Assembly: GCA_002269645.1 (NCBI GenBank)
Contig: NIVC01003092.1
Location: 1-55,594 of the forward strand
DNA: 55,594 bases
Origin: Macrostomum lignano
Lineage: Eukaryota
Direction of reading: 5' to 3'
A model generated the notes under the pieces. It was not told the DNA's origin, did no database searches, and worked only from the letters and a program-made list of their open reading frames with translations. The position numbers were made by a program, and so were the translations under genes. This document shows, piece after piece, positions 4,195 to 43,074 of the stretch (within the stretch, counting starts at the first letter, position 1; each line of letters begins with the position of its first letter).

Positions 4195-4950
4195 ATGAAC
4201 TCAAAACGCTCACTGCAGCTGCTGCTCAGTGCAGCCCTCTTCTTGATGCCGATATCGACTCAAAGCCTGTTCCAGACTGTCAGAACTCGCAGTGCGGTGG
4301 CTCCGACAGTCACGGACTCTGCGCCAGGCAGCGTCAGCCTGGAGTGCGCATCGCTCTGCGCCCTGAGACCCGCCTGCTTCGGCTTCAGCCTGCTGCGGGG
4401 CCTCTGCCGCTTCTTCGATCTGTGGGCTTTTGAAAACGGCACTTGGCACAGCTCGGATGAGTGCGACCTGCACATCATGCTGACGGGTGAGTCCTCACTG
4501 TGAACCCGCCCGAGTTTTGGTTCGATAGAATAACTGAAAGGAACTGTGGGATATTGCAGACAAAGCCAAGCTGCAATTCATCAGCTGCCAGCAGAGCTCG
4601 GTTGAACACGGCTCAGTGTGCGGGAAGGCCATCGATGGAGTCAAAAATCAGGACGTAAAAAAGGATTCTGTAGCCACACTGGTAAAGGAAAAAGCGGCTG
4701 GTGGGAGGGCCAGCTGGCCAGACCTGCCTTCATCTCTCACGTCACCATCTACAACAGAGTTGACTGCTGCATGAACCGACTCAACAAGCTGTCACTGATT
4801 GCTGACGGTGTCGAGTGCAACCGGGTGGACCTGACGGTGCCGTTCTCTGTGGCCAGCTTCACCTGCAAGGCTTTCGGCAGCAAAGTGAGGATTGTTAACC
4901 TGCAAGACGTACCTTTGAATATGTGTGAAGTGGAGATCTACGGTCGCTGA
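4195..4950 (+). CDS. A1: secreted PAN/apple-like + F-type lectin (fucolectin) domain protein, with a 1-nt frameshift
   Basis: Exons 4195-4486 and 4560-4950 (GTGAGT donor, TTGCAG acceptor, phase 1). Signal peptide MNSKRSLQLLLSAALFLMPISTQS; PAN-type ECASLC...C...C; F-lectin motif H-x26-RVD-CCMN-R. Spliced length is 683 nt; the frame shifts in the A6 run at 4657-4662 relative to paralog A2. It is either a pseudogene or a sequencing error. Confidence 0.85.
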
Positions 4951-6984
4951 TTAATTGCTGAATTCTCTTGAAAGAAGACTTAATTCTGTGCTACAAGTGC
5001 AAAGTTAGAAGCATAGATGATGAGCGGTAAAGTAGCAGTTAACAGTCGTTATATTGAAATATTTCCCTATTGTTTTCAGACAACTATTTCTCACTATTTT
5101 AATTTCAGTTAAATGAAAAGGAAAAAAAACGCAAAAACATAAAACAAACGAAAACAATCATCTAATGTTCAAGACATATCTACTTTAATGTTTTTAATTT
5201 TTATTCATCTTGAAGTGGACTAAAAAACTAACGATATCTTTCTCTGTTTACCTGCACTGTTTCCTCATTTCTAAAGTTTTTGCTTTGTTTTCCACTGAAA
5301 CATTAGGACTCAACCGCTCGCATATAATAAATAGTTAAAAAACGTAGAGCCTAAAACTATGTTTAGAGTGGGTTTAGCTTTTTATGATGCATGTGCATTC
5401 AGGCAGACTAAGGAAGATAAAAAGTTTAATCTACGTTAATAAGCTCATTTGATTCGACTGATATCAAATGCAATAACAATAAAAATTTGATGCTGAAAGT
5501 TGTTGGATATCCGTCTGTTTCCAGTTACACTTGCTGGTAAACCCGCTCTTCCGTAAATAATCTCAAGTAAAAATCTCGTGGTAGGGAATAACCACGGGCT
5601 ATGGACAGGCTGACAAGATAAGCAAGAGCAGAAGCAAAAACGAAAACATTAAATTGAAGACAAATCGGCGCGAAAGGAGTATATTGGAGTGTAATACGGT
5701 GGCGAGAAAATAGCCCTTGAACTTATGAAATTATTTTGTTAAAATTAAGAAGTCTCTATACTTGTAAAGACTTCACTTAGTTTGCGTGGCAGAAAGATGC
5801 TTATGCGATAGCATGATAAAATCATTCATATATGTATTTGTCGAAATAGTATTTTAACCGATCAATAATTTGGGGACTGTAAAATAGACAAGTCACGTGC
5901 ATGTACGCACAAAAGAACAAGCGAAGGAGAGAGTTAAAGAGCACGATGGTAAAGTGTACGCAGCAACCCCCTCAGCACCCCACAATACACAAGCCAAGTC
6001 ACTATACTACAAATCTACAATACAACAGAGCCTCTCAAGCTCTTCCCTTGCCTGCCGAATCGGCTTCCTTGCGGAATCGGGTATTAGCTGACACCATATG
6101 ACGCGTCTATCCAGGAAGGCAGATGTACTCCGGCGTAAGGCTTTCTGTTCACCGGGTCTTAATTTGTCCGGGGGACATCGCAAAGCAAAATTATTGTCGC
6201 TTTGCGATAACCTACCCTGGATAATCCAAGGCGCAACAAAATCGGGCTTTGAAATGTCATGGGTCTTGAATTGTCCGGTGAATAAAAATTGGGGTGGCAA
6301 GTTAGTCAAATTATTTACAAGACCAGGCGCTTGTGAATGCGTGGGGCAGAAGCCGAAGGAACATCATTAAGCGAGAATAGGACTGACTCAGAGTGCTTGG
6401 GAGGGGCAGATAAGATGCCCGTGCAAGCGTACATCTACCCGTGCAAGCGTACATGCCATGAATATCAGTGTACGAGCTAATAGGCCGCAAAGGAATGTTC
6501 GCTAAAATTATAATACAACTATTCTTTTCAGATAGTTGGAATAAATTTCTTGCCTAAGTCCTACGTTTTGGAAAAATAATTCACTCGGTGGCCAAAGCAA
6601 CGCTAAAACAAGTGTTTTTTTACGTTTTTAGCGACGAGCATGTTGAGCTGCCAGAACATTACAGTACAAGAGAGAGACAAATGTCTCGGCAAAATTAGCT
6701 CGTACTTATCAGCTGGCTGGTTTCCCAAACTGTGAAAACGGAAAGCATCTAAGCGGATGGCCAATTTTTGATTTATCGAATTAGATTGGTGAATGGAGTA
6801 ACAAACTGGTTTTTGGTTGACAATAGTAGCTTTAATTTTAGTTCCTTTTGGAGAGTGAAACGCGAAATGGTTTTTGAAATATGCACCGTTAAATAAGCAT
6901 GACGCAGATGTTTGCCATGGAAAAAGTAGCAAAAAGTGATTTTCTACTTTGCGAAAAGTCTTCTCGAAAGTTTCTATTTCTATA

Positions 6985-7300
6985 GCCCCGGATATCAGTA
7001 TCTGGATGTCCTAAAGCAAACCTGAAGGCTGACCCCTCTCTTTCAACCTACAATCGGATGTCCTAAGACAACTTCCCCTTCTTGTGATCTCCGGGCCGGA
7101 TAGCAGAGTCGGTGCCGTAGGATGTCCGGGAGAGACATCTCAAAGTGCCCGGACAATGCAAATCAGCTCAAGATATCCGGGAAGGAGAAAACAAAGCAGG
7201 TTTTTTTGCTTGGCAGTATCCGGGCGGATATTGTAAGTGCGTTCGGATATCCGGGCCAGACAAAAAAACTCCGGATAGTCTAAAGTGTAACACCGGCGTT
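6985..7300. repeat. Degenerate element rich in ccggat/atccgg motifs in both orientations (possible MITE relic)
   Basis: ccccggatatc near the left end and gatatccggg near the right end, with repeated internal motifs; no clear TSD. Confidence 0.3.
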
Positions 7301-7321
7301 GCCCCCGTTTTCTCGCGAAAT

Positions 7322-7408
7322 CACGAACAGTGACCGCTCGAACCTACGCAGAACCGCTTTCGAGTATCCGAGGGCGACCACTGTGTCCCGCTGCACCGCT
7401 GCTTCCAC
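7322..7408 (-). mobile_element. tRNA-derived SINE head relic
   Basis: Minus strand reads ggaagcagcggtgcagcggg...gtaggttcgagcgg, giving A-box-like and B-box-like motifs at tRNA spacing. Confidence 0.4.
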
Positions 7409-7844
7409 GAGCATTACGATCTGCTCAAGAAAGTCTTGAGACTAATCAAGACGGGTGACAGAGGACGCAGAACAGGCGATAAAAATAATACAAAATGCAA
7501 AATTGTTGACCAAAAACTCTACAAAGCTGATTATCTGATCTCTTATCAGCGTATTTCAATCAATACGAATTCAGACTAATCCGTTTGAAGGCGGAATCCC
7601 CTGCTAATTTTTCGGCTGTTACCAAAACTAAAAATCGTCTTTAAAAGTGAAGGCATCCAATATTTGGATTGGATTGGGGAGATGCCAGGGTTCGCAGGGC
7701 AACTGCTGAAATTCCAATTACCATCAATCGATGGGGGACTAAGACTAAATATATAGATTTATATAATTTTTATATATTTAGTTATAGAAGCATATAGAAG
7801 CAGCGATGTCTTTACTCCTAGAAAGTTCTAAAATAAGAGAACAC

Positions 7845-8030: not shown

Positions 8031-8105
8031 TTTAAGTGTATCGTCACTCAATTAAAACCAGAAAAAAGCTGAAAGCTAAAATAATCTTCGTATCGCTGCA
8101 AAAGA

Positions 8106-9593
8106 ATGGCAAAACAACTTTTATCGATAAAGTTTGCTTATGTATTCGGTAAGTGACTGAACTATAGCCGCCACTATGATTTTAATACCAATTAGTTTTA
8201 CGCTTTAGGTTGCACTCTGTTCTTCAATGACAACAAAGTAAATTATCCCAACGCAGTTTGCTGCTCTCTCGTGCTTCGAGTACAAGGCACCAGTTTGCGG
8301 ACCTATTCTGTGTGCTCAGAGCAGCAGCTTCACATGCTGGAAGCCGTTCTGAACGCCTACAACAACGTCACGACAACAACCAAGGCCACTGATGCAACCG
8401 ACTGTCTAGCGAAGTGCCAGAGGGTGAGCTGCAGCGCTGCCGTCTCGGTGGAGAGCAATGCCACGTGCGAGATGGTCACCATAACAACCGCCAAGCTGTC
8501 AATCTCAGCAAATCAGGTGCAGCAAGTCATCGGATCTCAGGTCGGTGCGAAGGTGTGGAAGGCGGACGACAGCGACTGGCCTTCGCCTGCAGTGCAGCTT
8601 TGGAGTGAGTCATCAATGCATAGTCTTAGTCGTAAGTTGTTACCAAGATTTCGGCAGACAGAAATTGCACTCACTCCAGTTCTGCACGACGCTGCTCCGT
8701 TGCAGACAGCAGCACAGGTAGAAACGGCTCAATCCAAAGCGTCCTCATCAACACGACCGGCTGCTACCTGATCAAAGCTGCCGGCGCCAGAGGTGGCCAC
8801 AACTTACTGACGAACACACCCGGAGGCCAGGGAGCCCAGGTGAGCGCCAGAGTCAACCTGACAGCCGGCACCCAGCTGAGCATCGTTGTGGGCCAGATGG
8901 GCGGCTCGACCTCTCGAAATAGCGAAGGAGGCGGCGGAGGCGGCGGCAGCTTCGTGTACCGGACGGGTGACCAGCTGCTGCTGCTGGCTGCCGGCGGAGG
9001 CGGCGGAGCTTCTTGCTTAGAAAATGGTGAGCCCAGTAGCTGTAGTGTAAATTATAAAAAAAATCCACTTGAATCAACAATTTGATTTTACCGTAGGTAA
9101 ACCAGGAGAGACTGGGATAAACGGTTCTGACAGCCTGGGTAACGTCGCTAAATACACGGGATTCGGTGGCAGCAACGGTCAGCCGGGCTACAACAGCCCC
9201 GCTGACACCAGAAGCGATAGAACCCATGGAGGCTGCGGCGCCGGCTGGCTCGGCAGGGCCGTCAAGCGCAGGCGGAGCTCCTCGGACGGAGAGAGAGGCG
9301 GCAGTCTGGCCGACGGCTGGGTCGGCGGCAGCGCCGGAGACGGCAGCGTCTGCGACGGCGGCTTCGGTGGAGGCGGCGGAGGCGGCAGCAGGACCAGCTC
9401 ACTGAAAGGCGCCCCTGGAGCCGGCGGCGGCTTCAGCGGCGGCGGAGCCGGACTGAGCTACGGTCACGTCGGCGGCGGCGGCGGCTCCTTCTGCAGGGGC
9501 GGCTGCGTGTTCTGTGGCACCTCTACCGGGCACCAGGGCTTCGTCTCCGTCCTGCTGGAGTCGACCTCGGCCGCTTGCGATTCGGGCACCTGA
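8106..9593 (+). CDS. B1: secreted PAN/apple-like + ALK/LTK-type glycine-rich domain protein, 402 aa
   Basis: Exons 8106-8148, 8257-8604, 8706-9026, 9097-9593; all introns GT-AG phase 1; 1209 nt, open frame. Signal peptide MAKQLLSIKFAYVFVCCSLVLRVQG. PAN DCLAKCQRVSC...C. Gly-rich domain motifs GCYLIKAAGARGG, LSIVVGQMG, GGGGGGSF, LLAAGGGGG, GGSLADGWVGG, DGGFGGGGGG, GAGGGFSGG. Several N-x-S/T sequons; no TM segment before the stop. Confidence 0.9.
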
Positions 9594-10671: not shown

Positions 10672-11228
10672 TGGTAGAGATGCAGGGAGGCAGAGATGCA
10701 GGGCGGAGGCAGAGATGCAGGGTGGTGGCAGAGATGCAGGGAGGTGATAGAGACGCAGGGCGGAGGCAGAGATGCAGGGCGGTGGCAGAGATGCAAGGAG
10801 GTGGCAGAGATGCAGGAAGGTAGCAGAGATGCAGGGAGGTGGCAGAGATGCAGGAAGGTGGCAGAGATGCAGGAAGGTGGCAGAGATGCATGGAGGTGGC
10901 AGAGATGCAGGGAGGTGAGAGAGATGCAGGAAGGTGGCAGAGATGCATGGAGGTGGCAGAGATGCAGGGAGGTGATAGAGACGCAGGGCGGAGGCAGAGA
11001 TGCAGGGAGGTGATAGAGACGCAGGGCGGAGGCAGAGATGCAGGGAGGTGAGAGAGATGCAGGGCGGTGACAGAGATGCAGGGCGGTGACAGAGATGCAT
11101 GGAGGTGAGAAAGAGGCAGGGAGGTGAGAAAGAGGCAGGGAGGTGGCGGAGATGCAGGGAGGTGAGAGAGATGCAGGGCGGTGGCAGAGATGCAGGGAGG
11201 TGGCAGAGATGCAGGGATCGGTGACAGA
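10672..11228. repeat. 19-bp minisatellite (gcagagatgcagggaggtg and variants)
   Basis: About 29 imperfect copies read directly. Confidence 0.95.
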
Positions 11229-12478: not shown

Positions 12479-12714
12479 GACTGAACCTCGGTTAGAATAC
12501 AGGAAAACTTTATTCAATTTGAATCTTGCAAGAACTAAAACAAAAGTAGCAAGCATGCCGTTTCAATTTCACTGTCAAAGTTCAGTAAGGGTATGATAAA
12601 AAACATTTTCCACGTAACATAAACAGTGAAAATTATATTCATAAACTTTATTATACGATCTGTCTCTCCTTCATCTCCGACTGATCGGTGACTAGCGGAT
12701 TCATACATCGCTGC

Positions 12715-13290
12715 ACCTCGCTGCATCTCTGCTAGCTCCCTGCATCTCTGCTAGCTCGCTGCATCTCTGCTAGCTCCCTGCATCTCTGCTAGCTCCCTGC
12801 ATCTCTGCTAGCTCCCTGCATCCCTGCTAGCTCCCTGCATCTCTGCTAGCTCGCTGCATCTCTGCTAGCTCCCTGCATCTCTGCTAGCTCGCTGCATCTC
12901 TGCTAGCTCCCTGCATCTCTGCTAGCTCCCTGAATCTCTGCTAGCTCCCTGCATCCCTGCTAGCTCCCTGCATCTCTGCTAGCTCGCTGCATCTCTGCTA
13001 GCTCCCTGCATCTCTGCTAGCTCCCTGCATCTCTGCTAGCTCGCTGCATCTCTGCTAGCTCCCTGCATCTCTGCTAGCTCCCTGAATCCCTGCTAGCTCC
13101 CTGCATCCCTGTATCCCTCCTAGCTCCCTGCATCCCTCCTAGCTCCCTGTATCCCTCCTAGCTCCCTGTATCCCTCCTAGCTCCCTGCATCCCTCCTAGC
13201 TCCATGTATCCCTCCTAGCTCCCTGCATCCCTCCTAGCTCCCTGTATCCCTCCTAGCTCCCTGCATCCCTCCTAGCTCCCTGCATCCCTC
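12715..13290. repeat. 19-bp minisatellite (gctagctccctgcatctct, grading into ccctcctagctccctgcat)
   Basis: About 30 copies. The reverse complement gcagagatgcagggagcta matches 16 of 19 nt of the 10672-11228 unit. Confidence 0.95.
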
Positions 13291-13299
13291 CTAGCTCCC

Positions 13300-13560
13300 T
13301 GCATCCCTTCCGTCCCGCTTTATCAAGCAGTATGGAAGGGCGCAGATGCGAGCAGGAAGGCAGCTGCAGTCGAGCGGCCTTGGCATGCACCGAAAGCAGA
13401 CATTGAAGGACAGATGAACACACATTTTTCCGCTCGTCTAAAAAAACCTCCGACAATTCTCCGGTAGGAAAAAAGGACGAGCGGCTACGGACAAAGAAGT
13501 GTATTTAGTGTATTTAGTGATAAGAACTTAGTGAGTAGTCAGATTTCGAGTCACTTAACT
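13300..13560 (-). other. Conserved downstream element of B2
   Basis: Reverse-complement homolog of 10085-10345. Confidence 0.7.
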
Positions 13561-13955: not shown

Positions 13956-16900
13956 TCAGGTGTCCAAGTTGCAGGTGGCTGAGTCCGACTCCAGCAGGAC
14001 GGACACGAAGCCCTGGTCGCCGGTCCAGGTGCCGCCGAACACGCAGCCGCCACTACAGAAGGAGCCGCCGCCGCCGCCGCTGTGGCCGAAGCCCAGTCCG
14101 GCTCCGCCACCGCTGAAGCCGCCACCACCTCCAGCCGTTCCATTAAGTGGGCTGGTCCTGCTGCCGCATCCGCCGCCTCCGCCGAAGCCTCCGTCGCAGA
14201 CGCTGCCATCTCCGGCGCTGCCGCCGACCCAGCCGTCGGCCAGACTGCCGCCTCTCTCTCCGTCCGAGGAGCTCCTCCTGGGGCTGACGGCCCTGCCGAG
14301 CCAGCCGGCGCCGCAGCCACCGTGGTTGCTATGGCTTGGGGTTCCAGAGGGGCTGTTGGAGCCCGGATTACCGTTGGTGCCGCCGAATCCAGCCAGGGTA
14401 GTGCCGGCACCAAGACTGTCAGAACCGTTTATCCCAGTCTCTCCCTGTTGTCCTACGGTATAATCAAGCAAGCTGCTTATCAGTGGCTTTTCGGTTCATA
14501 ATTTACATATTTTTAGCAAAATGCAGCCACTGAGCTCACCGTTTCTACTAAAGGAAGCTCCGCCGCCTCCGCCGGCAGCAAGCAGCAGCAGCTGGTCGAC
14601 CGTCCGGTACACAAAGCTGCCGCCCCCTCCACCGCCTCCTTCTAAATCCAAGGAGGTCGAGCCGCCCATCTGACCCACAACGATGCTCAGCTGTGTGCCG
14701 GCTGTCAGGTTGACTCTGGCGCTCACCTGGGCTCCCTGGCCTCCAGATGTGCTCCTCAGTAAGTTGTGGCCACCTCTGGCGCCGGCAGCTTTGATCAGGT
14801 AGCAGCCGGTCGTGTTGATGAGGACGCTTTGGATTGAGCCGTTTCTACCTGTGCTGCTGTCTGCAACGGAGCAGCGTCAGCGAGTTACAGAACTGGAGTG
14901 AGTGCAATTTTTGTCTGTGCCAGAATCGTAGTTGCGTTGGTTTGTGACTGGTTCTAACCTGTGACTATCCAGTTTTGAATCCCAATCTTCGGCCCTGCCA
15001 GTGTCGCCCTGCATGCGTTCTCTCTTCCACTTGTCCACGCTGTATGGACTGCTTGGCTCTGTGTGCCTTGAGTGGTGGCCTGGTGGGGGCGGGCTTTAGC
15101 CTCGGCGTCTTGTATTTGCATCTCGCTATGTTTACTCAGTGCTTTGGGATGTCTGTATGAGCTCAAAACTTTAGCTGTAAATTTTCGATTTGCCGTCATA
15201 TCTGATATCGACCGGTTAAAAATGGCCCAAGTTCTCACGGCTCTGAGAGACAAAGGCCTGCCGGCTTCGGTAAATACGAGGGGTGATCAAAAAGTTCTGC
15301 AACCTTTTGTTATAGCTTTTAGTTATAGAATCAGCAAAAGCCAAAAACTTACACATATGCGGCTATATCTGTTTGCTATATTTATATGCATTTTTGGCTT
15401 CCAAATGTGCTCCAGTAAAATTTCACAGCCATATATTTTCCATGTGTTTTCAGTAGCTGATGGAAACATCAAAAGACAGTGTTCGCTTCTATATCTTTAT
15501 GTGCATGCAACTTGGTTGCAAAGTGACAGAGATTCACACCATGTTTTGTGAATGTTTTAGCTGACTCTGCTCCATCATTTGACACAGTTGCCTGCTGTCT
15601 CGCATACTGCTTCATTCTATCCCGTCTCGTCTCCTTCGTCATACTCTATACAGTCGCGTCTGATGGCGCCCTAACTACTGACAAATGTAGAGGTTTATCC
15701 ATTCATAGAATGTTACTGTAAGTAGACTAATGCAAACACGCATAGCAAAACTTAAACTGTTAATCATGTTACTATTAAAACGGAGAAATGGATCATGTTA
15801 TCATTTATAATGAAAAAGATGAATCATGCTACTCGTATTATTCATATCTCGCAAAAATTGCTTATAAATACAAGCAAAAAATCCGAGATGGAATCTTAGA
15901 CTCGGAGCAGCCTCAAGAGGACTTGAGAACAACCAAGAACTACGAGGCTACATCTCTGAGAGAAGTAAATACCGTTCGGTAAGTCTTTGTTGGAGTCTTT
16001 GTTATTTGATTACTGAGAGCTTTGTTACCGCCGGCCGTACTGATCAGTTGATTTCTATAGAGTTGTTGACTTTGAGGCCTCCCTTTTCCTAAGGGATTGG
16101 ATAAGATCTGCGGACCGATACCGATACTCTTAGACGATTATCGATTGATTGATTTTGGTACCCTAGAGTAACAGATAGGGGCACAAGACTCTGATTCTCC
16201 CTCAGAAGACGCCCTCTCAGAGGACCTCGTTATTGTTACTGGGTAATAGATGTTACTACGTAATATTGCTAATAGGGCTCATCTCTGATTTTGATTACTA
16301 ATTTCGAAGAATACATTGACGTCGACAGATCGAATTGTTACGTTCACTAAAGTGCTCTCATACTCGGCCGACTTCAGAATCCAAGAAACTCCGGAGGAAG
16401 ACTACATTGAGGAGACAAGCTCTATGGATCTGTCTGACAACTGAGGAGCCCGCAATAGTGAGTGATCACTAAATTCTGTTCCCAGACTTGCGGTCTGGAA
16501 GTGGGAGTTTTTGAGTGACTAATCACCACTCTTAAACTACTCACAAAATCTAACCAGCCCGCCAAGCCGCCAGGCAAAGCCGCCAATTCAGACACCGGGT
16601 CGATTTTTCACCCGGTGTCTCACCATAGTTTCAATATACTAGCCTGCGTCATGAATTCTTCATCGTCAAAAAGCCAGCTCAATCAGTCGCCGAAGTCAGC
16701 AACTACGAATCCGCTCTTTGTGAGGACAGAAAGACAGCTGGTTGAGTTCCAGATCAAAGAGGAAGATGAGACTGGCCGCACTTGATTAGAATCAGGTTGC
16801 TACCGCGCATCTCCGTTCGTGGCAATGCTGCTGTTGATCTTCTTTAGGTTTAATGCGTTGGTCTGTGACTGCTTCTGACTTGTTACTAACCAGTTTTAGG

Positions 16901-17725
16901 CAACACTACTCTGCCCTGTCTATGTCGCCTTGCGTGCGTCCTTTCTCTCTCTCTCTGCCCACGCTGTAGAGGGGGGGAGGGCGTTACTCGGCTCTGCGTG
17001 CATGGGGTGGTGACTCGATGGGGGGTGGGCGCCGTCGCCCTTATATTTGCGTCTTGCTCCGTCTAATCAGCGGTTTTGGCTGCCTGCGACAACTCAAAGT
17101 TTTTTCTCTAAAGTTCTTCTTTGCATCACTGTTTTAATTGGTTTTGCCAACTACACTTTGATTTCGAACTTTTGCTTTTACGTGCCATTGCTGCTTTTGT
17201 ATCTTCTCTAGATTTAAAACCACCCACGACTATAAATTGCTGACTCACTCTGAAGATGCACTGCAGGCGAAGGCCAGTCGCTGTCGTTCGCCTTCCACAC
17301 CTTCGCACCGACCTGAGATCCGATGACTTGCTGCACCTGATTTGCTGAGATTGACAGCTTGGCGGTTGTTATGGTGACCATCTCGCACGTGGCATTGCTC
17401 TCCACCGAGACGGCAGCGCTGCAGCTCACCCTCTGGCACTTTGCTAGACAGTCGATATGAGTAGCCTTGGTTGTTGTCGTGACGTTGTTGTAGGCGTTCA
17501 GAACGGCTTCCAGCATGAGAAGCTGCTGCTCTGAGCACACAGAATAAGTCCGCAAACTGGTGCCTTGTACTCGAAGCACGAGAGAGCAGCAAACTGCGTT
17601 GGGGCAATGCGCGGTCAGTAATGAACAGCATGCATTGAATAACTGTGAGCAGCGGTTTTGAGTCAGGAAGGGAGTCACTTACCGAATAAGAAAAGTAATT
17701 GTAAAGACAAAATTTGATCAGTCAT
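13956..17725 (-). CDS. B2: secreted PAN + ALK/LTK-type glycine-rich domain protein, 401 aa; intron 2 expanded by about 2.3 kb of nested insertions
   Basis: Exons 17725-17683, 17593-17249, 14860-14540, 14452-13956; 1206 nt, open frame, phase-1 GT-AG introns. Signal peptide MTDQILSLQLLFLFVCCSLVLRVQG. Intron-2 homology to B3/B5 breaks near 14936 and resumes near 17214. Confidence 0.88.
14940..17213 (+). mobile_element. Two tandem copies of an unclassified ~350-450-bp dispersed repeat; the first is split by nested insertions
   Basis: 14942-15175 is similar to 16855-17100 (gcgttggt.tgtgactg...ccagtttt...gtcgcc.tgc.tgcgt...ctcaaa). 16790-16850 and 17110-17210 both match the 38090-38240 end of a third, inverted copy. 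Confidence 0.6.
15275..15620 (+). mobile_element. Tc1/mariner transposon 5' relic
   Basis: Mariner-type TIR start tacgaggggtgatcaaaagt at 15275. ATG at 15460 gives METSKDSVRFYIFMCMQLGCKVTEIHTMFCE, then after a frameshift DSAPSFDTVA, matching the mariner N-terminal HTH pattern (G..ATEIH..L..VYGD.APS..TV). Confidence 0.75.
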
Positions 17726-21269: not shown

Positions 21270-22825
21270 TCAACTAGTTAAACCCCACCTCAACAAGCGG
21301 TTGCAGTGCCACCAGGTGCCCGAGTCGCAGGCGGCTGAGGCCGACTCCAGTATGATAGACACGAAGCCCTGGTCCCCGATCCAGGTGCCGCCGAAGACGC
21401 AGCCGCCCTTGCAGAAGGAGCCGCCGCCGCCGCCGATGTGGCCGTGGCTCAATCCGGCTCCGCCGCCGCTGAAGCCGCCGCCGGCCCCAGGGGTGCCTTT
21501 CAGTGAGCTGGTCCTGTGGCCGCATCCGCCGCCTCCGCCGAAGCCTCCGTCGCAGACGCTGCCGTCTCCGGCGCTGCCGCCGACCCAGCCGTCGGCCAGA
21601 CTGCCGCCTCTCTCTCCGTCCGAGGAGCTCCGCCTGGGGCTGACGGCCCTGCCGAGCCAGCCGGCGCCGCAGCCTCCATGGGTTCTATCGCTTGGGGTGT
21701 CAGCGGGATTGTTGTAGCCCGGCTGACCGTTGCTGCCGCCGAATCCCATGTATGCGCTGTTTGCTCCGATGCTGTCAGAACCGTTTATCCCAGTCTCTCC
21801 CGGCTGTCCTACATTTAAATTAATCCAACTGCCGATGTAATCTTATGTAATCTAATGCCGGTTTTTGGTTCGCATATTGTAGAATCTACCCTACTGCCGC
21901 TACTGAGCTCACCATTTTCACCGGTTGATGCTCCGCCGCCTCCGCCGGCAGCTAGCAGCAGCAGCTGGTCGACCGTCCGGTACATGAAGCTGCCGCCCCC
22001 TCCGCCGCCTCCTTCGATATCCAACGACGTCGAGCCGCCCATCTGACCCACAACGATGCTCAGCTGTGTGCCGGCTGTCAGGTTGACTCTGGCGCTCACC
22101 TGGGCTCCCTGGCCTCCAGATGTGCTCCTCAGTAAGTTGTGGCCACCTCTGGCGCCGGCAGCTTTGATCAGGTAGCAGCCGGTCGTGTTGATGAGGACGC
22201 TTTCGATTGAGCCGTTTCTGCCTGTGCTGCTGTCTGCAATGAAGCAGCGTCAGCGAGTTATAGAACTGGATTGAGTGCAATTTCTGTCTGTGCCAAAATC
22301 ATGGTAACCATCCACAACTAAGACTATGTATTGATGACTCACTCCGAAGCTGCACTGCAGGCGAAGGCCAGTCGCTGTCGTCCGCCTTCCACACCTTCGC
22401 ACCGACCTGAGATCCGATGACTTGCTGCACCTGATTTGCTGAGATTGACAGCTTGGCGGTTGTTATGGTGACCATCTCGCACGTGGCATTGCTCTCCACT
22501 GAGACGGCAGCGCTGCACCTCACCCTCTGGCACTTTGCTAGACAGTCGATATGAGTGGCCTTGGTTGTAGTCGTGACGTTGTTGTAGGCGTTCAGAACGG
22601 CTTCCAGCATCTGAAGCTGTTGCTCTGAGCACACAGAATAGGTCCGCAAACTGGTGCCTCGTACTCGAAGCACGAGAGAGCAGCAAACTGCGTTGGGGCA
22701 ATGCGTGGTCAGTAATACAGTACACAGCATGCATGGAATAACTGTGAGCATAGGTTTTTAAGTCAAGATTGCAGTCACTTACCGAATAAGCAAAGTAATT
22801 GTAAAGACAGAACTTTATCATCCAT
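21270..22825 (-). CDS. B3: secreted PAN + ALK/LTK-type glycine-rich domain protein, 415 aa (C-terminally extended)
   Basis: Exons 22825-22783, 22687-22343, 22233-21913, 21808-21270; 1248 nt, open frame. TGG at 21312-21314 replaces the TGA of the paralogs and adds WWHCNRLLRWGLTS. Confidence 0.9.
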
Positions 22826-28648: not shown

Positions 28649-28770
28649 TGCTGGAATATGCTTGCTATGATGTAGCCGTGCATTGTGGGCTTGAGCAGCT
28701 ACTCAGTAAAGCTGGGATATTTTGGCACAGATAGTTAATTGCACAACCGGCTGATGCTGCTCCATTGCAG

Positions 28771-29005
28771 ACAGCAGCACAGGTAGAAACGGCTCAATCC
28801 AAAGCGTCGTCATCAGCATGACCGGCTGCTACCTGATCAAAGATGCCAGCGCAAAAGTAGGCAGAAACTTACTGACTTGCACATCCGGAGTCTGCCTGAC
28901 AGCCGGTGCACAGCTGAACACCGTTGTTGGACGGATGGGCGGCTCGACCTCCTTGGATTTGGAAGGAGGCGGCGGTGGCGGCAGCTTCGTTTTCCAGACG
29001 AGCAT
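28771..29005 (+). pseudogene. Isolated, degraded exon 3 of family B
   Basis: Conserved acceptor ccattgcag|acagcagcacaggtagaaacgg. Translates TGCYLIKDASAKVGRNLLTCTSG[deletion]LTAGAQLNTVVGRMGGSTSLDLEGGGGGGSF and is then truncated; no flanking exons. Confidence 0.9.
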
Positions 29006-30378: not shown

Positions 30379-31981
30379 TCGATGCTGTGCGTGGATAAAA
30401 CAAGGTTTCCTTAAAAGATCGGCCTTTTAGACATGTTTTAACTCTGCGTGCGCGCTCCATTGGAGAAAGGCTCCATCATTGGTCGAATTGGTTGAGCTTG
30501 TAGTTGAGATGCTTCACGGCTATTGGTGGGAGTCGCGCAATAGTCATGCAGTAGGTATTTTAAACTGTGTTTAGTGCAGAAATACAGTTTTGTACAAGTT
30601 TTTTTGTTTATTGTTTGTCTCCAATCTCAAATGATCATCGGCTTCATTAGACAATAGACCCACTGGTGGGAACAGTTCCATCGTGAGTAGAACTCTTTGT
30701 TTCAAATTCGAATTCAGCAAAAAGTTTCATCTACAGTTGAATGAATCCCCGACAGAAGCGCAAGATCAAGTTCTAGCACTGCCCAGACACCTCAGATGAA
30801 TACCAATTTACAAGTTCGCTGCTGGCGATAATAAACTGGCTACCTGAATATTTACTTAATCAAGAATAATTTTGATTTGGCGTGTCTAGAAAACTCCAGA
30901 AAATATCTGGTACGATATAACGACAAGCGGCTGGTGACATACAGGTACAAATCGATTGTGTTCAAGGTTAGTTTTACTGCAACAGGTGTAGTGTGTTTCA
31001 AATGCGTAGTTGATTAGTTCAGCAAAGGTTCCAGACCTGCGTGCCAATGGGTCCCTCTTTGTACACAGAAAAGCTGCACAATTTTTGTCAAGATCAAAAG
31101 AAAACTTTATAACCCTCATGTGTTGGGAAGTGAGCGAAACAGAAGCAGCATAGAAGTCAAGCTAATCTTAACATTCCTAGCTCTGCAGCAACGAAGGCGA
31201 ATACGTTGAAAAGTAGCTCGCCTATGATATTATCTGACAGAAGTTCCAGGCGATGTTTCAGGTGCAGCACAATGGCAGAGATCGTGCGTAAGGAATTAAA
31301 ACAACCAAAGTTATAAAATCTCCTGCACCTGTTCCCTTTATTACTGATGATAACTCTTGCGTCTCTTCTCTTGAATTGAATCGTAAATACTCGTGATGAA
31401 ACTGTGGTCAGCAAAATCAAGTGTCTTTTGTTGCTAAATTTTCCAAGACTTGAAATCTACCGAGACAGATAAAAGCAACCAAGCTCAATTGTGAGTCGAT
31501 AGCGGGAAACCTGTTACAAAAGTATCAGGAAAAATCGATCAATTAGAAGTAGACCAAAAAAAACAATTGAACCGGTGCCAGCATTAAATCGCATATTCCA
31601 AATTTAAGTTGCGAGTTAGGGTTAGGGTTTGAGTTTGGGTTGGGCTCGTAGGGATGCAAAATATTTAATTTTTATCACTATCAGAAACTTTCTCAAGGAA
31701 GATAAAATAGAATAAATTGTCAGCGTTAGCATGAAAACAACCAAAAGCTCACTAAATCAATACATCTGCTCTATGAATACATCTTCGTTATTGTTCAGTC
31801 AAGTTAATACGTAAAAACAACCTATGGAATTCATTCGACGCTCGTATGGCTACTGAGAAATAATCGAGCAGCAGCATCAGGTGTCCAAGTCGCAGGTGGC
31901 TGAGGCCGACTCCAGCAGGACGAACACGAAGCCCTGGACGCCGGTCCAGGTCCCGCCGAAGACGCAGCCGCCCCGGCAGAA

Positions 31982-32209
31982 CCGCCGCAGCCGCCAATGT
32001 GGCCCTGACCCAGTCTGGCCCCGCCGACGCTGAAGCCACCGCCGCAGCCGCCAATGTGGCCCTGACCCAGTCTGGCCCCGCCGACGCTGAAGCCACCGCC
32101 GCAGCCGCCAATGTGGCCCCGACCCAGTCTGGCCCCGCCGACGCTGAAGCCACCGCCGCAGCCGCCAATGTGGCCCTGACCCAGTCTGGCTCCGCCGACG
32201 CTGAAGCCA
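31982..32209. repeat. 4 x 57-bp tandem duplication inside psi-B4 (GGGFSVGGARLGQGHIGGC)
   Basis: Units start at 31982, 32039, 32096 and 32153. Confidence 0.95.
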
Positions 32210-32510
32210 CCGCGGGTCCATCGAAGACGCTGCCGTCTCCGGCGCTGCCGCCGAACCAGACATCGGCCAGACGACTGCCGCTTCTCTTTTACTCTCTCCG
32301 AGCAGCCTGCCTGGGGCAACTCGGCCCTGCCGAGTTAGCGGGCTCCGCAGCCGCCGTGGTGCTAGCGGAGGTGTGTTAGTGGGGTTTTTGACGTCCGGCT
32401 GACCGTTGATGCCACCGAATCCCGCGTTGAGGCTGTAGCCGTCCAGTCCGTCGAAACCGTCAATTCCAGCCTCACCCGGTTGTTCTACGGTGAAATCCAT
32501 CAATCTGCTT

Positions 32511-34994: not shown

Positions 34995-36493
34995 TCAGGT
35001 GCCCGAGTCGCAGGCGGCTGAGGCCGACTCCAGCAGGACAGACACGAAGCCCTGGTCGCCGGTCCAGGTGCCGCCGAACACGCAGCCGCCCCTGCAGAAG
35101 GAGCCGCCGCCACCGCCGCTGTGGCCCTGGGCCAGTCCGGCTCCGCCCCCGCTGAAGCCACCGCCGGCTCCAGGGGCGCCTTTCTCTGAGCTGGTCCTGT
35201 GACCGCCTCCACCGCCTCCGCCGAAGCCTCCATCGCAGACGCTGCCGTCTCCGGCGCTGCCGCCGACCCAGCCGTCGGCCAGACTGCCGCCTCTCTCTCC
35301 GTCCGAGGAGCTCCGCCTGGGGTTGACGGCCCTGCCGAGCCAGCCGGCGCCGCAGCCGCCGTGGTTGCTTTCGCTTGGAGTGTCAGCGGGGTTGTTGAAG
35401 CCTGGCTGACCGTTGATGCCGCCGAATCCTGCGTTTGGTTTGTAGTCACCCAGACTGTCGGAACCGTTGATCCCAGTCCCTCCCGGTAGCCCTACGATGA
35501 AATCAATCAAACTGCTTATCCAAGTTAAATTTTCGCTTTTGAAACTTCCCAATTCTAGCAACAAAGTTAATGAGATCACCATTTCTTTTGAAGCAAGCTC
35601 CGCCGCCTCCGCCGGCAGCAAGCAGCAGCAGCTGGTCGACCGTCTGGTACACGAAGCTGCCGCCGCCTCCGCCGCCTCCTTCGATATCCAACGACGTCGA
35701 GCCGCCCATCTGGCCCACAACGATGCTCAGCTGGGTGCCGGCTGTCAGGTTGACTCTGACGCTCACCTGGGCTCCCTGGCCTCCGGATGTGTTCGTCAGT
35801 AAGTTGTCGCCACCTCTGGCTCCGGCAGCTCTGATCAGGTAGCAGCCGGTCGTGTTGATGAGGACGCTTTGGATTGAGCCGTTTCTACCTGTGCTGCTGT
35901 CTGCAGTGGAGCAGCGTCAGCGAGTTACAAAATGGGAGTGAGTGCAATTTCTGTCTGTGCCAAAATCATGTAAGCCACCCACAACTAAGACTATGCATTG
36001 ATGACTCACTCCGAAGCTGCACTGCAGGAGAAGGCCAGTCGCTGTCGTCCGCCTTCCACACCTTCGCACCGACCTGAGATCCGATGACTTGCTGCATCTG
36101 ATTTGCTGAGATTGACAGCTTGGCGGTTGTTATGGTGACCATCTCGCACGTGGCATTGCTCTCCACCGAGACGGCAGCGCTGCAGCTCACCCTCTGGCAC
36201 TTTGCTAGACAGTCGGTTGCATCAGTGGCTTTGGTTGTTGTTCTGACGTTGTTGTAGACGTTCAGAACGGCTTCCAGCATGTGAAGCTGCTGCTCTGAGC
36301 ACACAGAATAGGTCCGCAAACTGGTGGTGCCTTGTACTCGCAGCACGAGAGAGCAGCAAACTGCGTTGGGGCAATTGGTTGTCATTAATAAATAGCATGC
36401 ATTGAATAACTTTTAGCAGCGGTTTTTAAGTCAAGATTGCAGTCACTTACCGAATAATAAAAGCAATTGTAAAGACAGAATTTTATTAGTCAT
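34995..36493 (-). CDS. B5: secreted PAN + ALK/LTK-type glycine-rich domain protein, 403 aa
   Basis: Exons 36493-36451, 36360-36010, 35900-35580, 35491-34995; 1212 nt, open frame. The intron-3 donor is GTGATC (weaker than GTGAGC in the paralogs). Signal peptide MTNKILSLQLLLLFVCCSLVLRVQG. Confidence 0.88.
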
Positions 36494-38004: not shown

Positions 38005-38760
38005 CACATTGAAGAGAAGCAATTGTTAAAGACAGAACTTGATCAGTCATGCTTGCAGCGATAGTCTTCAATGTCTTGCATTTCTTCTTTTTAAACCCAA
38101 AAGAAGAATCAAAAGCAGCATTGGCACGAAAGGGGATGCGCGGAAGCAACCCCATAAGAGCAACAGCTCGAATTAAAAGTGTATTTTGTATTACGAAAGC
38201 AAACAGCGATGCAAGAAAATTGGAAAAATAAAACTTTAAAGAAAAAAAATTGAGCTCACGCAGGCAGCCAAAAACGCTGAGTCAACTGAGCGAGACGCCA
38301 ATAAAAGGGGCGACGGCGCAGAGGCTAAAGCCCACCCCACCAGGCCACCACCCCACACACGCAGAGCCAAAGCATCACCCACACAGAGCGAACAGAAGGA
38401 GAGAGAAAGTACGCAAGGCGACACAAGGCGGGGCAGAGGAGTGGGCTTTAAAACTGGTTATTGACTAGTCATAAAAGGCTCGATTGATAGCTTTTCTACC
38501 TGTCTTTTTAGTGATGAAATACCAAATCAATTTTATCATATCAGAAGTTTTTATACTTTTAGTCAGGAAGCAGAGTGCATTCGCTGCTAGCTCGTACTTT
38601 TCCTCTGGAAGCTGAGAAGTTGTTTGCTACTCTAGAGACTAATACAAGTAGGTGTGGAAGAAGGTCTGAGCAGCGGACGGCTAAGAGGCCGACCAATCTC
38701 AGACATGAGCTGCCCTTATCGCTCAGGAGCTTTACCTACCGATGATTATTAAGCGCTGGA
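38005..38760 (-). pseudogene. psi-B6: exon-1 and promoter relic of family B, interrupted by a dispersed repeat
   Basis: gcaagcATGACTGATCAAGTTCTGTCTTTA (MTDQVLSL, then frameshifted, donor lost) near 38058; upstream block with CCAAT at 38693-38697; no exons 2-4 follow. Confidence 0.7.
38090..38475 (-). mobile_element. Third copy of the dispersed repeat found in B2 intron 2
   Basis: Reverse complement aligns with 16855-17210. Confidence 0.65.
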
Positions 38761-39098: not shown

Positions 39099-39161
39099 CT
39101 CAAGAATTGTTGAACTCATCAACCCCTAGATCAATAACATCCCTCACTCCCCTGTCCTCAG

Positions 39162-39586
39162 GTCCGTGAGCAGTGGCTGCTAATTGAGCACACCAACCAG
39201 GAGCTGCCGCCAAGCCGCCAGGCATCGGCTAGCAGAGCAGGCGGCAGCCGGGCTGGCCGTCCTCAGGGCTCAGTGCCGGAGAACAGCGCCTACGTGCTGC
39301 AGTACGAGATCAGCCTGCTGAAGCCGCACGCTGGCACAAACTCAAAAGCTGCCGAAGCAGTCAGAGGCCTTGAGCAGCGCCTCGCTCAGCACAAGCAGCT
39401 GCTGGCCAACTGTGGCGAGGTGAGAAGCGGCAGTACTGCTCAGTGCTGCAGCAGCTGTCGGCCACCTATGCTCAGCACGCCAAATCGGCTTTGCAGGAGA
39501 AGGACAGGGGCAAGGCTGAGAAGTTTCTTAAAAAGAAGAAGGAGGCGGACAGGGAGTTTCAGGATGTCAGTTCGCGGTTGCGGTGA
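39162..39586 (+). CDS. Orphan terminal exon resembling the C-terminus of CC2D1A/B (Lgd) family proteins; 1-nt frameshift near 39420
   Basis: Acceptor cccctgtcctcag|. Translates VREQWLLIEH...SAYVLQYEISLL...QHKQLLANCGE/GEKRQYCSVLQQLSATYAQHAKSALQEKDRGKAEKFLKKKKEADREFQDVSSRLR*. By recall this parallels CC2D1 ...EKWLVID...SLSVL...EYAAQLERQLQFYTEAARRL...RRNLVESEL. No upstream exons were recognised in the window. Confidence 0.5.
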
Positions 39587-40153
39587 CTGCAAAGTTTAAC
39601 AAATTCGGGTCTTGTCGATTCTTTGGGTAGACGGAGCAAGTTAAGGGGGCAGTTTTAAGTCGACTAATTAAATATTTGGGCCAAAAGTTCTCTAAACTGA
39701 TCCGCATTGGCTCTGATTGCCAGGCCGTTTTTTATTCAATAATATTTTGTATGAGTATAAAATGTCATGCATGCTACTTGAATTAGGGGGGAATCGCTTC
39801 GCCTAATGATAATTGCTATTGGCTGGTAATTGACTCCGCGCTTGCAAAACTATTTTAAGCAAATGTTAATAAGATTGATGTTTATTTGTTTAGCTATCAT
39901 GTTTTCATGATTAAATTTTCGACTGGAAGTATTTCATATATGAAAATGTTAATAAAGCAACTAATATATTCTATGTACATATATTCAGTTATAAATTCTG
40001 ATTGGTAAATAGGTTTTTTCCTGTTTATTAAATTGTTTTCTTTTTAAATGGTTCCGGCAGTTAAAGAAAGCACAAACAGATTGTGTTGGTCGTCCCGGTT
40101 TTCTGTTATAAATTTTCAGTCTGCTTTTTCCAGGAAAATTTGCCATTTCCAAG

Positions 40154-40450
40154 TTAAGTGTACCTTGGCCCGTTCTCGGTAGTCCTGCTGCTTCTTTTCG
40201 GGGGCTCATCCGTTTCCGACGCTGGCTGTGAAAAAATGCCGACGATAGCCACCGTGGATACCATCAGATCCTCGGGGGTAAGCCCATAGACTGCCCTGTG
40301 GCGGTCGCCAAGGGGACAGTCGAAGAGAGCGTGGTGCACCGTGTCTTTTGCACCGCAGTCGGGACAGGCTGGTGAATCTGCGATGCCCAGATCAGGACTG
40401 CGCAGGGGCGCAGCTGAGACAACTGCTCGGCTAGGTCGGTGCGTCAGGCC
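40154..40450 (-). mobile_element. Non-LTR retrotransposon (LINE) ORF2 3' relic with a CCHC zinc knuckle
   Basis: LGIADSPACPDCGAKDTVHHALFDCP fits C-x2-C-x6-7-H-x3-4-C, typical of LINE ORF2 C-termini. Confidence 0.65.
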
Positions 40451-40577
40451 TGCAATCCGTTATAGTTGATTTGCAGAACCTGGAGCTCTAGGCCGGGTCG
40501 AACGCTATGCCTGTGCTTTTTGCTCGTCCGTCTGGGCCGGTGGACGGCCGCATTGCTTGCGGTACCGCCCCCCCCCC

Positions 40578-40650
40578 CCACAAAGAGACAGTAGGGGCGC
40601 CCACCAAGAGACGGTAGGGGCGCCCACCAAGAGACAGTAGGCGCCCACCG
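40578..40650. repeat. 3 x ~23-bp tandem repeat (caccaagagacagtaggggcgcc)
   Basis: Read directly. Confidence 0.85.
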
Positions 40651-40998
40651 TAGGTGAAAATATAACAGAAGCACTACCCCTACATCAGTTAGAATATCTG
40701 ATAAGTTAGTAAAGAATAATCTGATAAGCCACAAAAATTTTGAATCATTCTCTAGAGGTATTTCGTCGAAAAATCAAACTGGACAGGATGTCAGTGACAA
40801 TCAGTAATAGTCGTTATTAACTCGTAAAATTATTCAACAGACTTCGAAGTTAATTAAAATATAAAATCTGGGCACGACATCGATCAGCCTTGCAAAAAAT
40901 CTTAAGTACATTTCTGAAGTCCTGCACACAAATGAATCACAGATCTTACTCAAAAAGTTTTTACTTTGGTGTGCATCCACTGCCGCCTGCCGGTGACA

Positions 40999-43074
40999 TC
41001 AGGCCAGTTGAATCATCAGTCGAATGCTCTTTAGGGCAACTAGGCCTCCAGCGGTGGCACCTGACCAATACATATATGCTAAGCCGCTCACTGCAGAGTT
41101 GTGATAAATCCCGTTCGGATTGGACTTTGAACAGCTTTGGAACCACCAACCTGAGTTTCCACGGGCGCTAGAACAGGCGGTACCATAATTATCGTTGTCT
41201 CGGTCCATGGTGGAGAACTGCATCCCCTTGTTGGCAGCAAGCGAGTTGCTGGTCGTGTTGGAACTGCCGCTCAGGTACGAAGTGTAGGTCATGATGTAGT
41301 TCGTGCTGGCATCGGCCACCGTGAAGCCGGAGTACTCGCAGACGTACAGCTCATCCGACCAGGTGACGGTCTCGACTCGCAAAAGTTTCGGTGAGCTTCC
41401 GGTCAGCTCGTGCATTTTACGAAGACCTGAAAATGTATTTGATATCATCTTTTGTTCGACTAAGCCGTCTGTTCGAATGAATTCTACGTGCTGCTCACCA
41501 ATCCAGAAGTCCGTGTCGTCTCCAAAGCCTTTTTCGTACTCAGTCCAACCGCGAGCAAAGCTGAGCTCGCCCTTCGATCTGTGCTGAATCACTTGGAATG
41601 TTTGACCACTGATTTCAACTAGCTTTTCTGAAAAAAGAAAAATAATAAACGTTAGCTTTAGTATTAAATGTCATCTCAGATATCTTGTACTGCCCCAAAA
41701 CTCACTGTCGCTCTTCGACAGAGCTTCGTTTCAGGAACAAAGGCGAAAGCAGAGCAGTCTTTTTTGTGCGAGGACTCGCACTTCAGAGCGCAGTCTACAG
41801 CGCTGTGACCAGGCTGCGATGTCATCGGAGCCGTCGTGGTTAGCAAAATCTCGACTTTAGAAAACACTGAAACATTGAAATAAACTTCCATCTGGTCCAG
41901 GACTGATGGAACTTTTAGGTTCAGCTGCGGTGTACCAGCGTATCGGATGCGAAACTGAATTTCAAATCTGTCGCAGCTATATTGTTGTGAATTGATTTGA
42001 GCTAAATATAGCAAAAGCCATGCGGACAAATCACAAGGACAACTTAAGCAGAAGGACGCAACACTCGAAATCTATGGTAAATGTTTTGAAGGCAACTCTT
42101 CGCCAGAGGAATACACTACGGAGATAGGAAACTTCACGATTTTTAACACTAAAACAGTGATTGGGTCTCTTAACAGTGTCAGAGAAAATCCTAAGCACAC
42201 TATTTTGTGCCTCAAATGCTGCTCTAACGGCTCATTAATCGATTTTTCATGTTAAATTAGCCTGTCACTTGAAAAAAAAACGTTAAAAATAATGACAAGA
42301 CCAATTCAACACGAAAAATCGATTAATGTGTCGTTAGAGCAGCATGTGAGGCACAAAATAGTGTGCTTAGGATTTTCTCTGACACTGTTAAGAGACCCAA
42401 TCACTGTTTTAGTGTTGAAAATCGTGAAATTTCCTATCTCCATAGTGTATTTTTCCTGTGAAATCTGCCTTAAGAACTATTTCTGAACGAAAAGCTTTAT
42501 GAATATCGATAGAGCAATAAGAACAGCACAACATATCAAAAGATAAACACTGGATCTGCCTCCTATCAAAAGCAATTACAATTTTTGTGCTGAAAAATGA
42601 AAACCTATCTCTGTAGTGTATTTTTCGGCGAAAAGTTGCCTTCGAAACATTTACCATATGTTTCGAGTGTAGCGTTCTATATATATATATATATATATAT
42701 ATGTTACTTGAGTAGTCCTTGACATATCATATTAAAAAGACTTTAAGATTAAAAGACTTAAGACTTAAAGATTAAAAAGTCTTATGAATATAATTCGATG
42801 TGTTCGAGCTATTACGATAGCCGTCCTGTGTGCCGGCCTTCTCAACACAAAATGAAATTAAAATCGCTCAGACCCCAGGTGAGATTAGATTTATTATAGA
42901 TTTATTTTTGTAACTTCATTAAAATAAAATTTGATTTATTTTAATGAACATTTGACAATAGGTTGAGCTGTAATCTAATTTACAATGGAACCTACCGGAT
43001 ACTGTGGTAGCGCCAGTCAAGAACGGAGTCCCGCCGATCAGCAACGCAGCAACGGCGACGAGAAAAACGGACAT
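40999..43074 (-). CDS. Secreted PAN/apple-like + fibrinogen-related domain (FReD) protein, about 265 aa
   Basis: Exon 1 43074-42996 (MSVFLVAVAALLIGGTPFLTGATTVS, GTAGGT donor, phase 1). PAN exon 41866 (or 42001)-41706 with DCALKCESSHKKDCSAFAFVPETKLC. FReD exons 41627-41499 and 41426-40999 with VIQHR, F.RGW.EY..GFG, FWIGL, FST.DRDND, GWWF..C..SN.NG. The PAN-FReD junction is 1 nt out of phase with the GTGAGT donor. Confidence 0.8.
42062..42669. mobile_element. MITE/foldback element in intron 1 of the PAN-FReD gene
   Basis: Long inverted arms cactcgaaa...atggtaaatgtt.. (42062-42270) and 42292-42460 plus 42600-42669; TA on the right flank, AA on the left. Confidence 0.8.
42678..42702. repeat. (TA)n microsatellite
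   Basis: Read directly. Confidence 0.95.

Follow-up and report, generated by a model that had tools for sequence, protein, structure and literature searches.

A 39-kb cluster of secreted-protein genes in Macrostomum lignano joins diverged PAN-type modules to F-type lectin, ALK-type glycine-rich and fibrinogen domains

Introduction

PAN/apple modules occur in proteins as different as plasminogen, HGF, factor XI/prekallikrein, nematode PAN proteins, Toxoplasma MIC4 and SML-2, and in apple lectins, factor XI and HGF they mediate binding or self-association. Lectin domains are joined to them in nematodes (C-type lectin with PAN/CW) and in plants (G-type lectin receptor kinases with PAN), in other lectin folds and another domain order than those reported here, and no link by descent is implied. 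Here we describe a cluster of genes from the free-living flatworm Macrostomum lignano in which a single N-terminal PAN-type module precedes an F-type lectin domain (FTLD), an ALK/LTK-type glycine-rich domain (GRD) or a fibrinogen-related domain (FReD). The cluster lies in contig NIVC01003092.1 of assembly GCA_002269645.1, of which positions 1 to 55,594 were analyzed and are called the window throughout.

F-type lectins are marked by a His...Arg-x-Asp-x4-Arg/Lys motif, with a spacing written as X24, and by a calcium motif hhDGx; among the partner domain types drawn in the domain-organization figure of the same source, PAN is absent (PMC5712786). The TNF-like and Gly-rich region constitutes the conserved extracellular core of the ALK-family receptors (PMC10605310). 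A literature search combining Macrostomum with fibrinogen, lectin, apple domain and secreted gene clusters found no paper on the genes described below.

Results

Between 4.2 and 43.1 kb the window holds two PAN + F-type-lectin genes (A1 and A2), four intact PAN + GRD genes (B1, B2, B3 and B5), one PAN + fibrinogen gene (Fib) and two B remnants, and the best protein matches to the cluster genes all come from M. lignano. A first-pass annotation made from the sequence alone had counted seven secreted PAN genes, each with the module on an exon apart from its C-terminal domain; the gene models agree with this layout, except that A1 is frameshifted and the PAN of Fib is truncated. Its assignment of the three C-terminal domains was borne out by profile searches. 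The A-family lectin profile matched MsaFBP32 (E 2.2e-32), the Streptococcus pneumoniae fucolectin-related protein (7e-15) and eel agglutinin (AAA, 6e-13) in the PDB; a B-family GRD profile of 21 sequences matched ALK (E 5.6e-12), Caenorhabditis elegans SCD-2 (8e-10) and LTK (5e-7); and the Fib domain matched Pfam Fibrinogen_C (E 1.6e-37) over profile positions 37-208 of 221.

We accept PAN-superfamily membership for the N-terminal modules of all three families, most weakly for B, and thus concur with the earlier assignment; this judgment draws on Pfam matches of paralogs, UniRef names, profile comparisons and a structural search with a B model. The cysteine frames, read from the sequence, are C-x3-C-x5-C-x9-C in A, C-x3-C-x4-C-x11-C in B and C-x3-C-x7-C-x11-C in Fib. 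Against Pfam PAN_1 (cut-off 21.4 bits), the window copy of Fib scored 20.3-21.5 bits and the window A and B exons gave no match; the cut-off was passed by the paralogs P0121 (A family, 25.3 bits) and P0134 (Fib family, 24.7 bits) and by the coral protein P0088. The best PDB match of the Fib-family PAN profile was the plasminogen PAN (E 0.01), and that of the A-family profile was a pair of apple domains in Toxoplasma MIC4 (E 0.11). UniRef labels P0121 and P0123 of the A family and P0001, P0002 and P0018 of the B family "Apple domain-containing". An initial AlphaFold 2 (AF2) model of the B module, built from nine sequences, reached a pLDDT of 50 and gave no significant Foldseek match; a model from an 11-sequence alignment had a pLDDT of 69 (82-84 across the Cys core), and of the 30 best PDB matches that Foldseek returned for it nearly all were PAN modules, including the HGF N domain, plasminogen and SML-2 (prob 0.99).

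The modules share with the known PAN/apple proteins their CxxxC...C...C frame and phase-1 borders and, in the predicted B structure, the beta-alpha-beta-beta order. They differ in being present as one N-terminal copy fused to an F-lectin, FReD or GRD; moreover, A and B have diverged too far for Pfam PAN_1, and B is extended by an additional N-terminal helix and by a long C-terminal loop whose last residues are VWK.

The three PAN modules appear to be related to one another, with the Fib-family PAN as the least diverged hub, and are not copies of one exchangeable exon. With hhalign, A vs Fib gave 87% (E 4e-6) and B vs Fib 88-90% (E 1-3e-6), whereas A vs B gave 0.2-0.5% (E 0.1-0.26). The coral PAN, an independent canonical PAN that passes Pfam, gave E 0.027 with B, 0.09 with Fib and 0.39 with A. 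A generic set of mollusc and metagenome PANs plus the coral PANs, its non-coral members picked for matching the Fib profile, gave 95% with Fib (E 1.8e-8) and E values of 4e-4 with A and 1.4e-3 to 0.015 with B. A matrix of domain hidden Markov models (HMMs) had the same shape: with the Fib HMM, A members scored 7-16 bits and B members 3-20 bits; A and B scored ~0 bits with each other's HMM; and Fib members scored 22-32 bits with the generic HMM. The A and Fib families also share a motif, SLPGR[DN]xxxCAxxC, leading into the first cysteine. No DNA similarity between the A, B and Fib families was found by self-blastn of the window, and the Fib-PAN profile searched against 1.84 billion representatives recovered the PAN-FReD family and generic multi-PAN proteins, with no A or B protein at E <= 0.001. 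The first-pass idea of a single PAN shared by the three families therefore finds no support in the A-B comparison; of the mutual relatedness it expected, the A-Fib and B-Fib links stand and the A-B link was not detected.

As first annotated, the PAN exon of both A and B ends in phase 1. In B, and in the Fib-family paralog L002, the module is flanked by phase 1 on both sides; in A only the 3' border is an intron, of phase 1; and in Fib the 5' border is phase 1 and the 3' border either phase 0 or phase 1, according to which donor is used. The phase 1-1 borders fit classical module shuffling. Exon shuffling, as proposed earlier, is to that extent upheld, but neither a recent local origin nor a joint role of the families finds support. 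Stony corals (Stylophora, Pocillopora and Porites) encode signal-PAN-(spacer/EGF)-GRD proteins, and PANs of their own, very different in sequence, precede the GRD in at least 8 other M. lignano proteins. Because it is present in corals and in many dispersed M. lignano paralogs, the PAN-GRD combination would be long older than the present cluster. The other two combinations have a narrower range: PAN-FReD forms ~15-20 clusters of M. lignano proteins and was found nowhere else in the libraries searched (including the 1.84 billion representatives), and PAN-FTLD has three other homologs only, all from M. lignano.

PAN-fusion genes are not confined to the cluster. Each of three PAN-FReD loci on other contigs contains one or two tandem PAN-FReD genes (two at L001), and within ±10 kb of these loci no GRD or F-lectin match was found. 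One of these loci adjoins a wnt gene, and two paralogous loci come from assembly GCA_002269645.1. The GRD matches P0044 and P0099 belong to another assembly and are uninformative for clustering. Tandem copies are clearly fused into one in the public models P0121 and P0150, so the families tend to build separate arrays.

The A genes have two exons, the former encoding the signal peptide and Cys module and ending in phase 1, the latter encoding the lectin domain, with no 5' intron. A2, on the minus strand, is intact (exon 1, 30378-30087; exon 2, 30008-29623), and its lectin domain scores 32.9 bits against Pfam F5_F8_type_C_2 (cut-off 27.8). Read from its sequence, A2 carries the fucose triad H-x26-RVDCCINR (H-x26-R-x-D-x4-R) and the calcium motif AIDGV. 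We take AAA to be numbered His52/Arg79/Arg86, which gives 26 intervening residues, like A2. The A family thus shares with AAA, MsaFBP32 and the fucolectin-related protein the AAA-like spacing of the His/Arg/Arg triad, the hhDG motif and a ...CEVEIYG end, and differs from them in that its domain sits behind PAN and is slightly short, at ~125 amino acids (aa).

A1, on the plus strand, starts with an ATG at 4195, and its exon 1 (4195..4486) is followed by the donor GTGAGT at 4487. Its lectin exon (4560..4950, delimited by alignment to A2) is out of frame in the assembly: compared with A2 it has 5 bp inserted at ~4654-4662, at an A6 run (4657-4662), and the translation meets stops. The lectin frame remains visible as an open reading frame (ORF) at 4618-4950 with a match to Pfam F5_F8_type_C_2. 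The A1 defect may be a homopolymer error of the assembly with the same likelihood as it may mark a pseudogene, because one extra A restores NQDVKKGFCSHT, with a resulting loop length within the range of the paralogs. Rescue of the frame by a micro-intron (GTAAAAAAG) was considered and rejected, the candidate being too short.

Each B gene is divided into four exons. Aligning the DNA of the four genes brought out a 43-nt first coding exon (MTDQILSLQLLFLF-) and the short intron that follows it; exon 2 completes the signal peptide (...VCCSLVLRVQG) and encodes the Cys module, and exons 3 and 4 encode the Gly-rich domain. All three introns are GT-AG and of phase 1, and the four ORFs are open (401-415 aa). 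The 43-nt exons lie at 8106-8148 (B1), 17683-17725 (B2), 22783-22825 (B3) and 36451-36493 (B5). B1, the one gene of the four on the plus strand (402 aa), continues with 8257-8604 (PAN), 8706-9026 and 9097-9593. On the minus strand, B2 (401 aa) continues with 17593-17249 (PAN), 14860-14540 and 14452-13956; B3 (415 aa) with 22687-22343 (PAN), 22233-21913 and 21808-21270; and B5 (403 aa) with 36360-36010 (PAN), 35900-35580 and 35491-34995. The mature part of B2 is identical to UniRef A0A1I8HRN4 (P0001). The UniRef models P0001 and P0002 begin in unrelated upstream sequence and miss the signal peptide because the 43-nt exon with the start Met was left out. In B3 (21270-21312, minus strand) a TGG stands in place of the TGA stop of the other B genes, so that the stop is lost and a 13-residue tail is added. 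Intron 2 of B2 (14861-17248) is 2.4 kb long, against ~100 bp in B1, B3 and B5; pieces of its repeats recur at 38155-38474, and the expansion is probably a transposon insertion.

Singly, the window GRDs score 16.5-21.7 bits against Pfam PF12810, below its cut-off of 24.5, and many of their homologs carry a precomputed PF12810 match. A phmmer search of the PDB with one B GRD was likewise marginal (LTK, E 0.075), and the family profile was needed to reach the ALK, SCD-2 and LTK structures. The B proteins end ~10 residues past the GRD (...LLESASAACDSGT*), with neither a hydrophobic segment nor a kinase. Because they stop right after the GRD, the B proteins are predicted to be soluble, and they are neither ALK orthologs nor receptor kinases. 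In contrast to ALK and LTK, whose GRD they otherwise match, they lack a transmembrane helix and any kinase, MAM, LDLa or EGF domain. The coral secreted PAN-GRD proteins (e.g., Stylophora pistillata P0088) have the same order of signal, PAN and GRD as B; they differ by an extra segment, and often EGF repeats as well, between PAN and GRD, and by a PAN that barely resembles that of B (the E value of 0.027 given above). In the coral proteins P0088, P0052 and P0098, residues ~110-160 (...SCKEIK...SGKYWL...VLAHCDM...), between PAN and GRD, look like the motif of the N-terminal subdomain in domains of the fibrinogen or collagen-C-propeptide type; Pfam found nothing there. The M. lignano GRD paralogs P0007, P0010 and P0016 bear UniRef names for WSC-, calmodulin/EF-hand- or kinase-domain proteins; these names may reflect genuine additional fusions in some cases and merged gene models in others.

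Fib (~263 aa, minus strand) consists of a signal exon ending in phase 1 (43074-42996), a Cys-module exon (41866-41706 or 41702) and two FReD exons (41622 or 41627-41499, and 41426-40999) split by a 72-nt intron that reads open. The junction after the Cys module has two alternatives, either a strong phase-0 donor with a cryptic acceptor or a weak phase-1 donor with an acceptor homologous to that of paralog P0125. Its PAN stops 5-6 residues past the fourth Cys and lacks ~30 residues found in all paralogs; P0134, the closest of these, with a near-identical N-terminus, continues past this point with LLSELQNAEFAAVAPTGLVYRK. The PAN tail of the Fib paralogs reads ...LLSxxNADFxxxAPGxxVYRK, and complete ends are also found in A (...DVYTR / DLHIML) and B (...VWK). 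In the Fib paralogs scanned, the Fibrinogen_C match begins at positions 37-43. Because the paralogs start at the same profile point, the entire M. lignano PAN-FReD family appears to lack the N-terminal FReD subdomain, with the Cys module in its place. The calcium and ligand-site motifs of the Fib FReD are conserved; like ficolins, FREPs, tachylectin-5 and FIBCD1, it has the DRDND...C...GWW...C..SNPNG region. Unlike those proteins, it has no collagen, immunoglobulin-superfamily or coiled-coil head, and PAN replaces Pfam positions 1-36.

Among the B paralogs, the ratio of nonsynonymous to synonymous divergence (dN/dS) is 0.3-0.7 for PAN and GRD alike, as expected under purifying selection; a crude test gave no sign of diversifying selection. 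Their dS is 0.04-0.09 in the PAN exon, two- to five-fold below the 0.10-0.27 of the GRD exons. A1 and A2 show 98.3% identity in exon 1, 86% in the intron and 89% in exon 2. This pattern suggests that the PAN exons of each family were homogenized by gene conversion or share a more recent history, and that any such conversion was confined to the 5' part of the genes.

From left to right, self-blastn and tblastn place A1 (+), B1 (+), two inverted 19-bp minisatellites, B2 (-), B3 (-), a B exon-3 fragment (+), A2 (-), a B4 last-exon remnant (-), B5 (-), Fib (-), GC-rich repeats and a ~664-bp satellite that reaches the window end. Coding blocks in the window are split by GT-AG introns, and microsatellites occur among them. 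The B exon-3 fragment (28750..29000, plus strand), recognized by blastn and tblastn self-matches, is a frameshifted remnant of the N-terminal part of a GRD. B4 (31874..32510, minus strand), seen by self-comparison, retains the final GRD exon only; it is frameshifted and contains within its Gly-rich coding sequence a near-perfect 57-bp expansion (x4.1, 31981-32213). A Pfam scan of ten further long ORFs in the intergenic stretches yielded nothing credible. Genes without a PAN were not detected within the cluster, although short multi-exon ones could have escaped.

The inverted 19-bp minisatellites (10672-11217 and 12706-13305, ~29 and ~31 copies) are mutual reverse complements and lie between B1 and B2, where gene orientation flips. 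Beyond Fib, a 306-bp perfect direct repeat (44750-45055 and 46166-46471) flanks a GC-rich 24/175-bp tandem array (45412-45797), and the long repeat-derived ORFs near 44750-46471 are probably not genes. The satellite (46861-55594) has a ~664-bp unit in at least 13 copies that are ~99% identical; its period is above the limit of Tandem Repeats Finder, and it runs off the window end. At the left window edge, upstream of A1, are tandem arrays at 1-307 and 1466-2068 (23/113-bp and 31/90/121-bp units).

Discussion

From the observed gene structures, domain identities, pattern of relatedness and purifying selection, we lean, at somewhat better than even chances, towards reading the region as a junction of tandem arrays of three secreted families of the Macrostomum lineage, which were shuffled early, carry diverged PANs and multiplied by local duplication. 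The common plan would be a signal peptide, one PAN/apple module and one ligand-binding domain, whether an F-lectin, a FReD without its N-terminal subdomain or a TNF-like region with GRD. Classical phase-1 module shuffling is the most likely origin of this plan, at a time that we infer to lie well before the cluster, and the PAN of each family would since have diverged strongly into a type of its own. Local duplication, both tandem and inverted, would then have enlarged the families; gene conversion would have kept the PAN exons of a family similar to one another, and some copies would be decaying. By analogy, the proteins would serve in extracellular recognition: A and Fib would bind glycans, of fucose type and acetyl-group type as in their respective families, and B would bind an unspecified ligand through an ALK-like TNF-like/Gly-rich surface. 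PAN would add a second binding site or self-association, as in apicomplexan apple lectins, factor XI and HGF.

Three architectures side by side in 39 kb, phase-1 exon boundaries, A-Fib and B-Fib PAN similarity above that to the coral PAN, and the SLPGR[DN]xxxCAxxC motif common to A and Fib could all be read as marks of recent local exon shuffling, in which one PAN exon moved between neighbors and came to serve all three families as an adaptor, perhaps in hetero-oligomers of A, B and Fib proteins. We consider this improbable, as the A and B PANs are detectably alike only in their Cys frame, self-blastn shows no DNA similarity between the families, generic PANs are nearer to the Fib-family PAN than A or B are, PAN-GRD occurs in corals and many dispersed paralogs, and no A or B gene lies within ±10 kb of the three other PAN-FReD loci. 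That three independently evolved and expanded families simply abut in a duplication-prone region, PAN being frequent in invertebrate secreted proteins, strikes us as unlikely. In its favor, the region is rich in satellites, minisatellites, gene remnants and inverted duplications, each family is also found elsewhere, and PAN + lectin combinations arose independently in nematodes. However, the A-Fib and B-Fib profile similarity (E ~1e-6) is stronger than that to an unrelated canonical PAN, the finding of PAN-FReD and PAN-FTLD in M. lignano alone among the libraries searched suggests one lineage-specific burst, and under uniform placement the adjacency of all three would presumably be rare.

Two further explanations concern what the genes do. 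The B proteins might be soluble ALK ligand-binding modules that bind or sequester a cytokine of the ALK-ligand type, in which case their lectin neighbors would be irrelevant; their C-terminal domain does match the ligand-binding TNF-like and Gly-rich region of ALK, SCD-2 and LTK, the conserved core of these receptors (PMC10605310), and the paralog P0016 is named a kinase-domain protein. Against this stand the low identity to ALK, the lack of any ligand candidate seen, and the nearest relatives, which are ~300-aa non-kinase metagenome GRD proteins and coral secreted proteins; because of these relatives the fold would be used far beyond receptor tyrosine kinase signaling, and we regard the ligand-sequestering role as very doubtful. 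A decaying, largely non-functional array of post-duplication pseudogenes would account for the A1 frameshift, the truncated Fib PAN, the B4 and B-fragment remnants and the lost stop of B3. It is hardly credible for the whole, given four B genes and A2 with intact ORFs, canonical splice sites and dN/dS well under 1, the intact binding motifs of A2, and an A1 defect located in a homopolymer of the kind in which long-read errors are typical.

Several observations weigh against the reading of the region as a junction of three older arrays. Three unrelated C-terminal families, all headed by PAN, within 39 kb are unlikely by random placement, which leaves room for a local origin, and the ±10 kb inspected at the three paralogous loci would allow co-clustering over a wider range. 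The hub position of the Fib-family PAN is partly built in, because the generic PAN set was chosen by similarity to it. Finally, the PAN assignment of B is statistically weak, because no B-family member matches Pfam PAN_1, the B-model Foldseek matches reach only E 0.03-0.3 and TM scores of 0.3-0.4, and the model has a pLDDT of 69; the B PAN alignment profile also retrieved nothing from the PDB.

A bolder proposal, which we regard as speculative and rather unlikely, is that a Macrostomum-specific PAN clade seeded PAN-FTLD, PAN-FReD and PAN-GRD at or near this locus and that the kinase-less GRD family, shared with corals, is an unrecognized recognition or lectin-like class co-regulated with true lectins. 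The immune role that the first-pass annotation gave to the Gly-rich family, and its notion of PAN as an adaptor for hetero-oligomers, may hold; what speaks for both is solely the adjacency of the genes.

New here are the combinations of PAN with an F-lectin and of PAN with a truncated FReD, so far seen only in M. lignano. As a variant of known mosaic lectin-like proteins, they should be of moderate interest to flatworm and lectin specialists, and the locus has descriptive value through its corrected M. lignano gene models and as a clear example of tandem duplicates whose PAN exons have undergone gene conversion. If the three families act together, the cluster would be a compact example of an invertebrate recognition repertoire made from few extracellular modules, and it would offer the first functional lead for the kinase-less secreted ALK-type GRD proteins of flatworms, corals and metagenomes.

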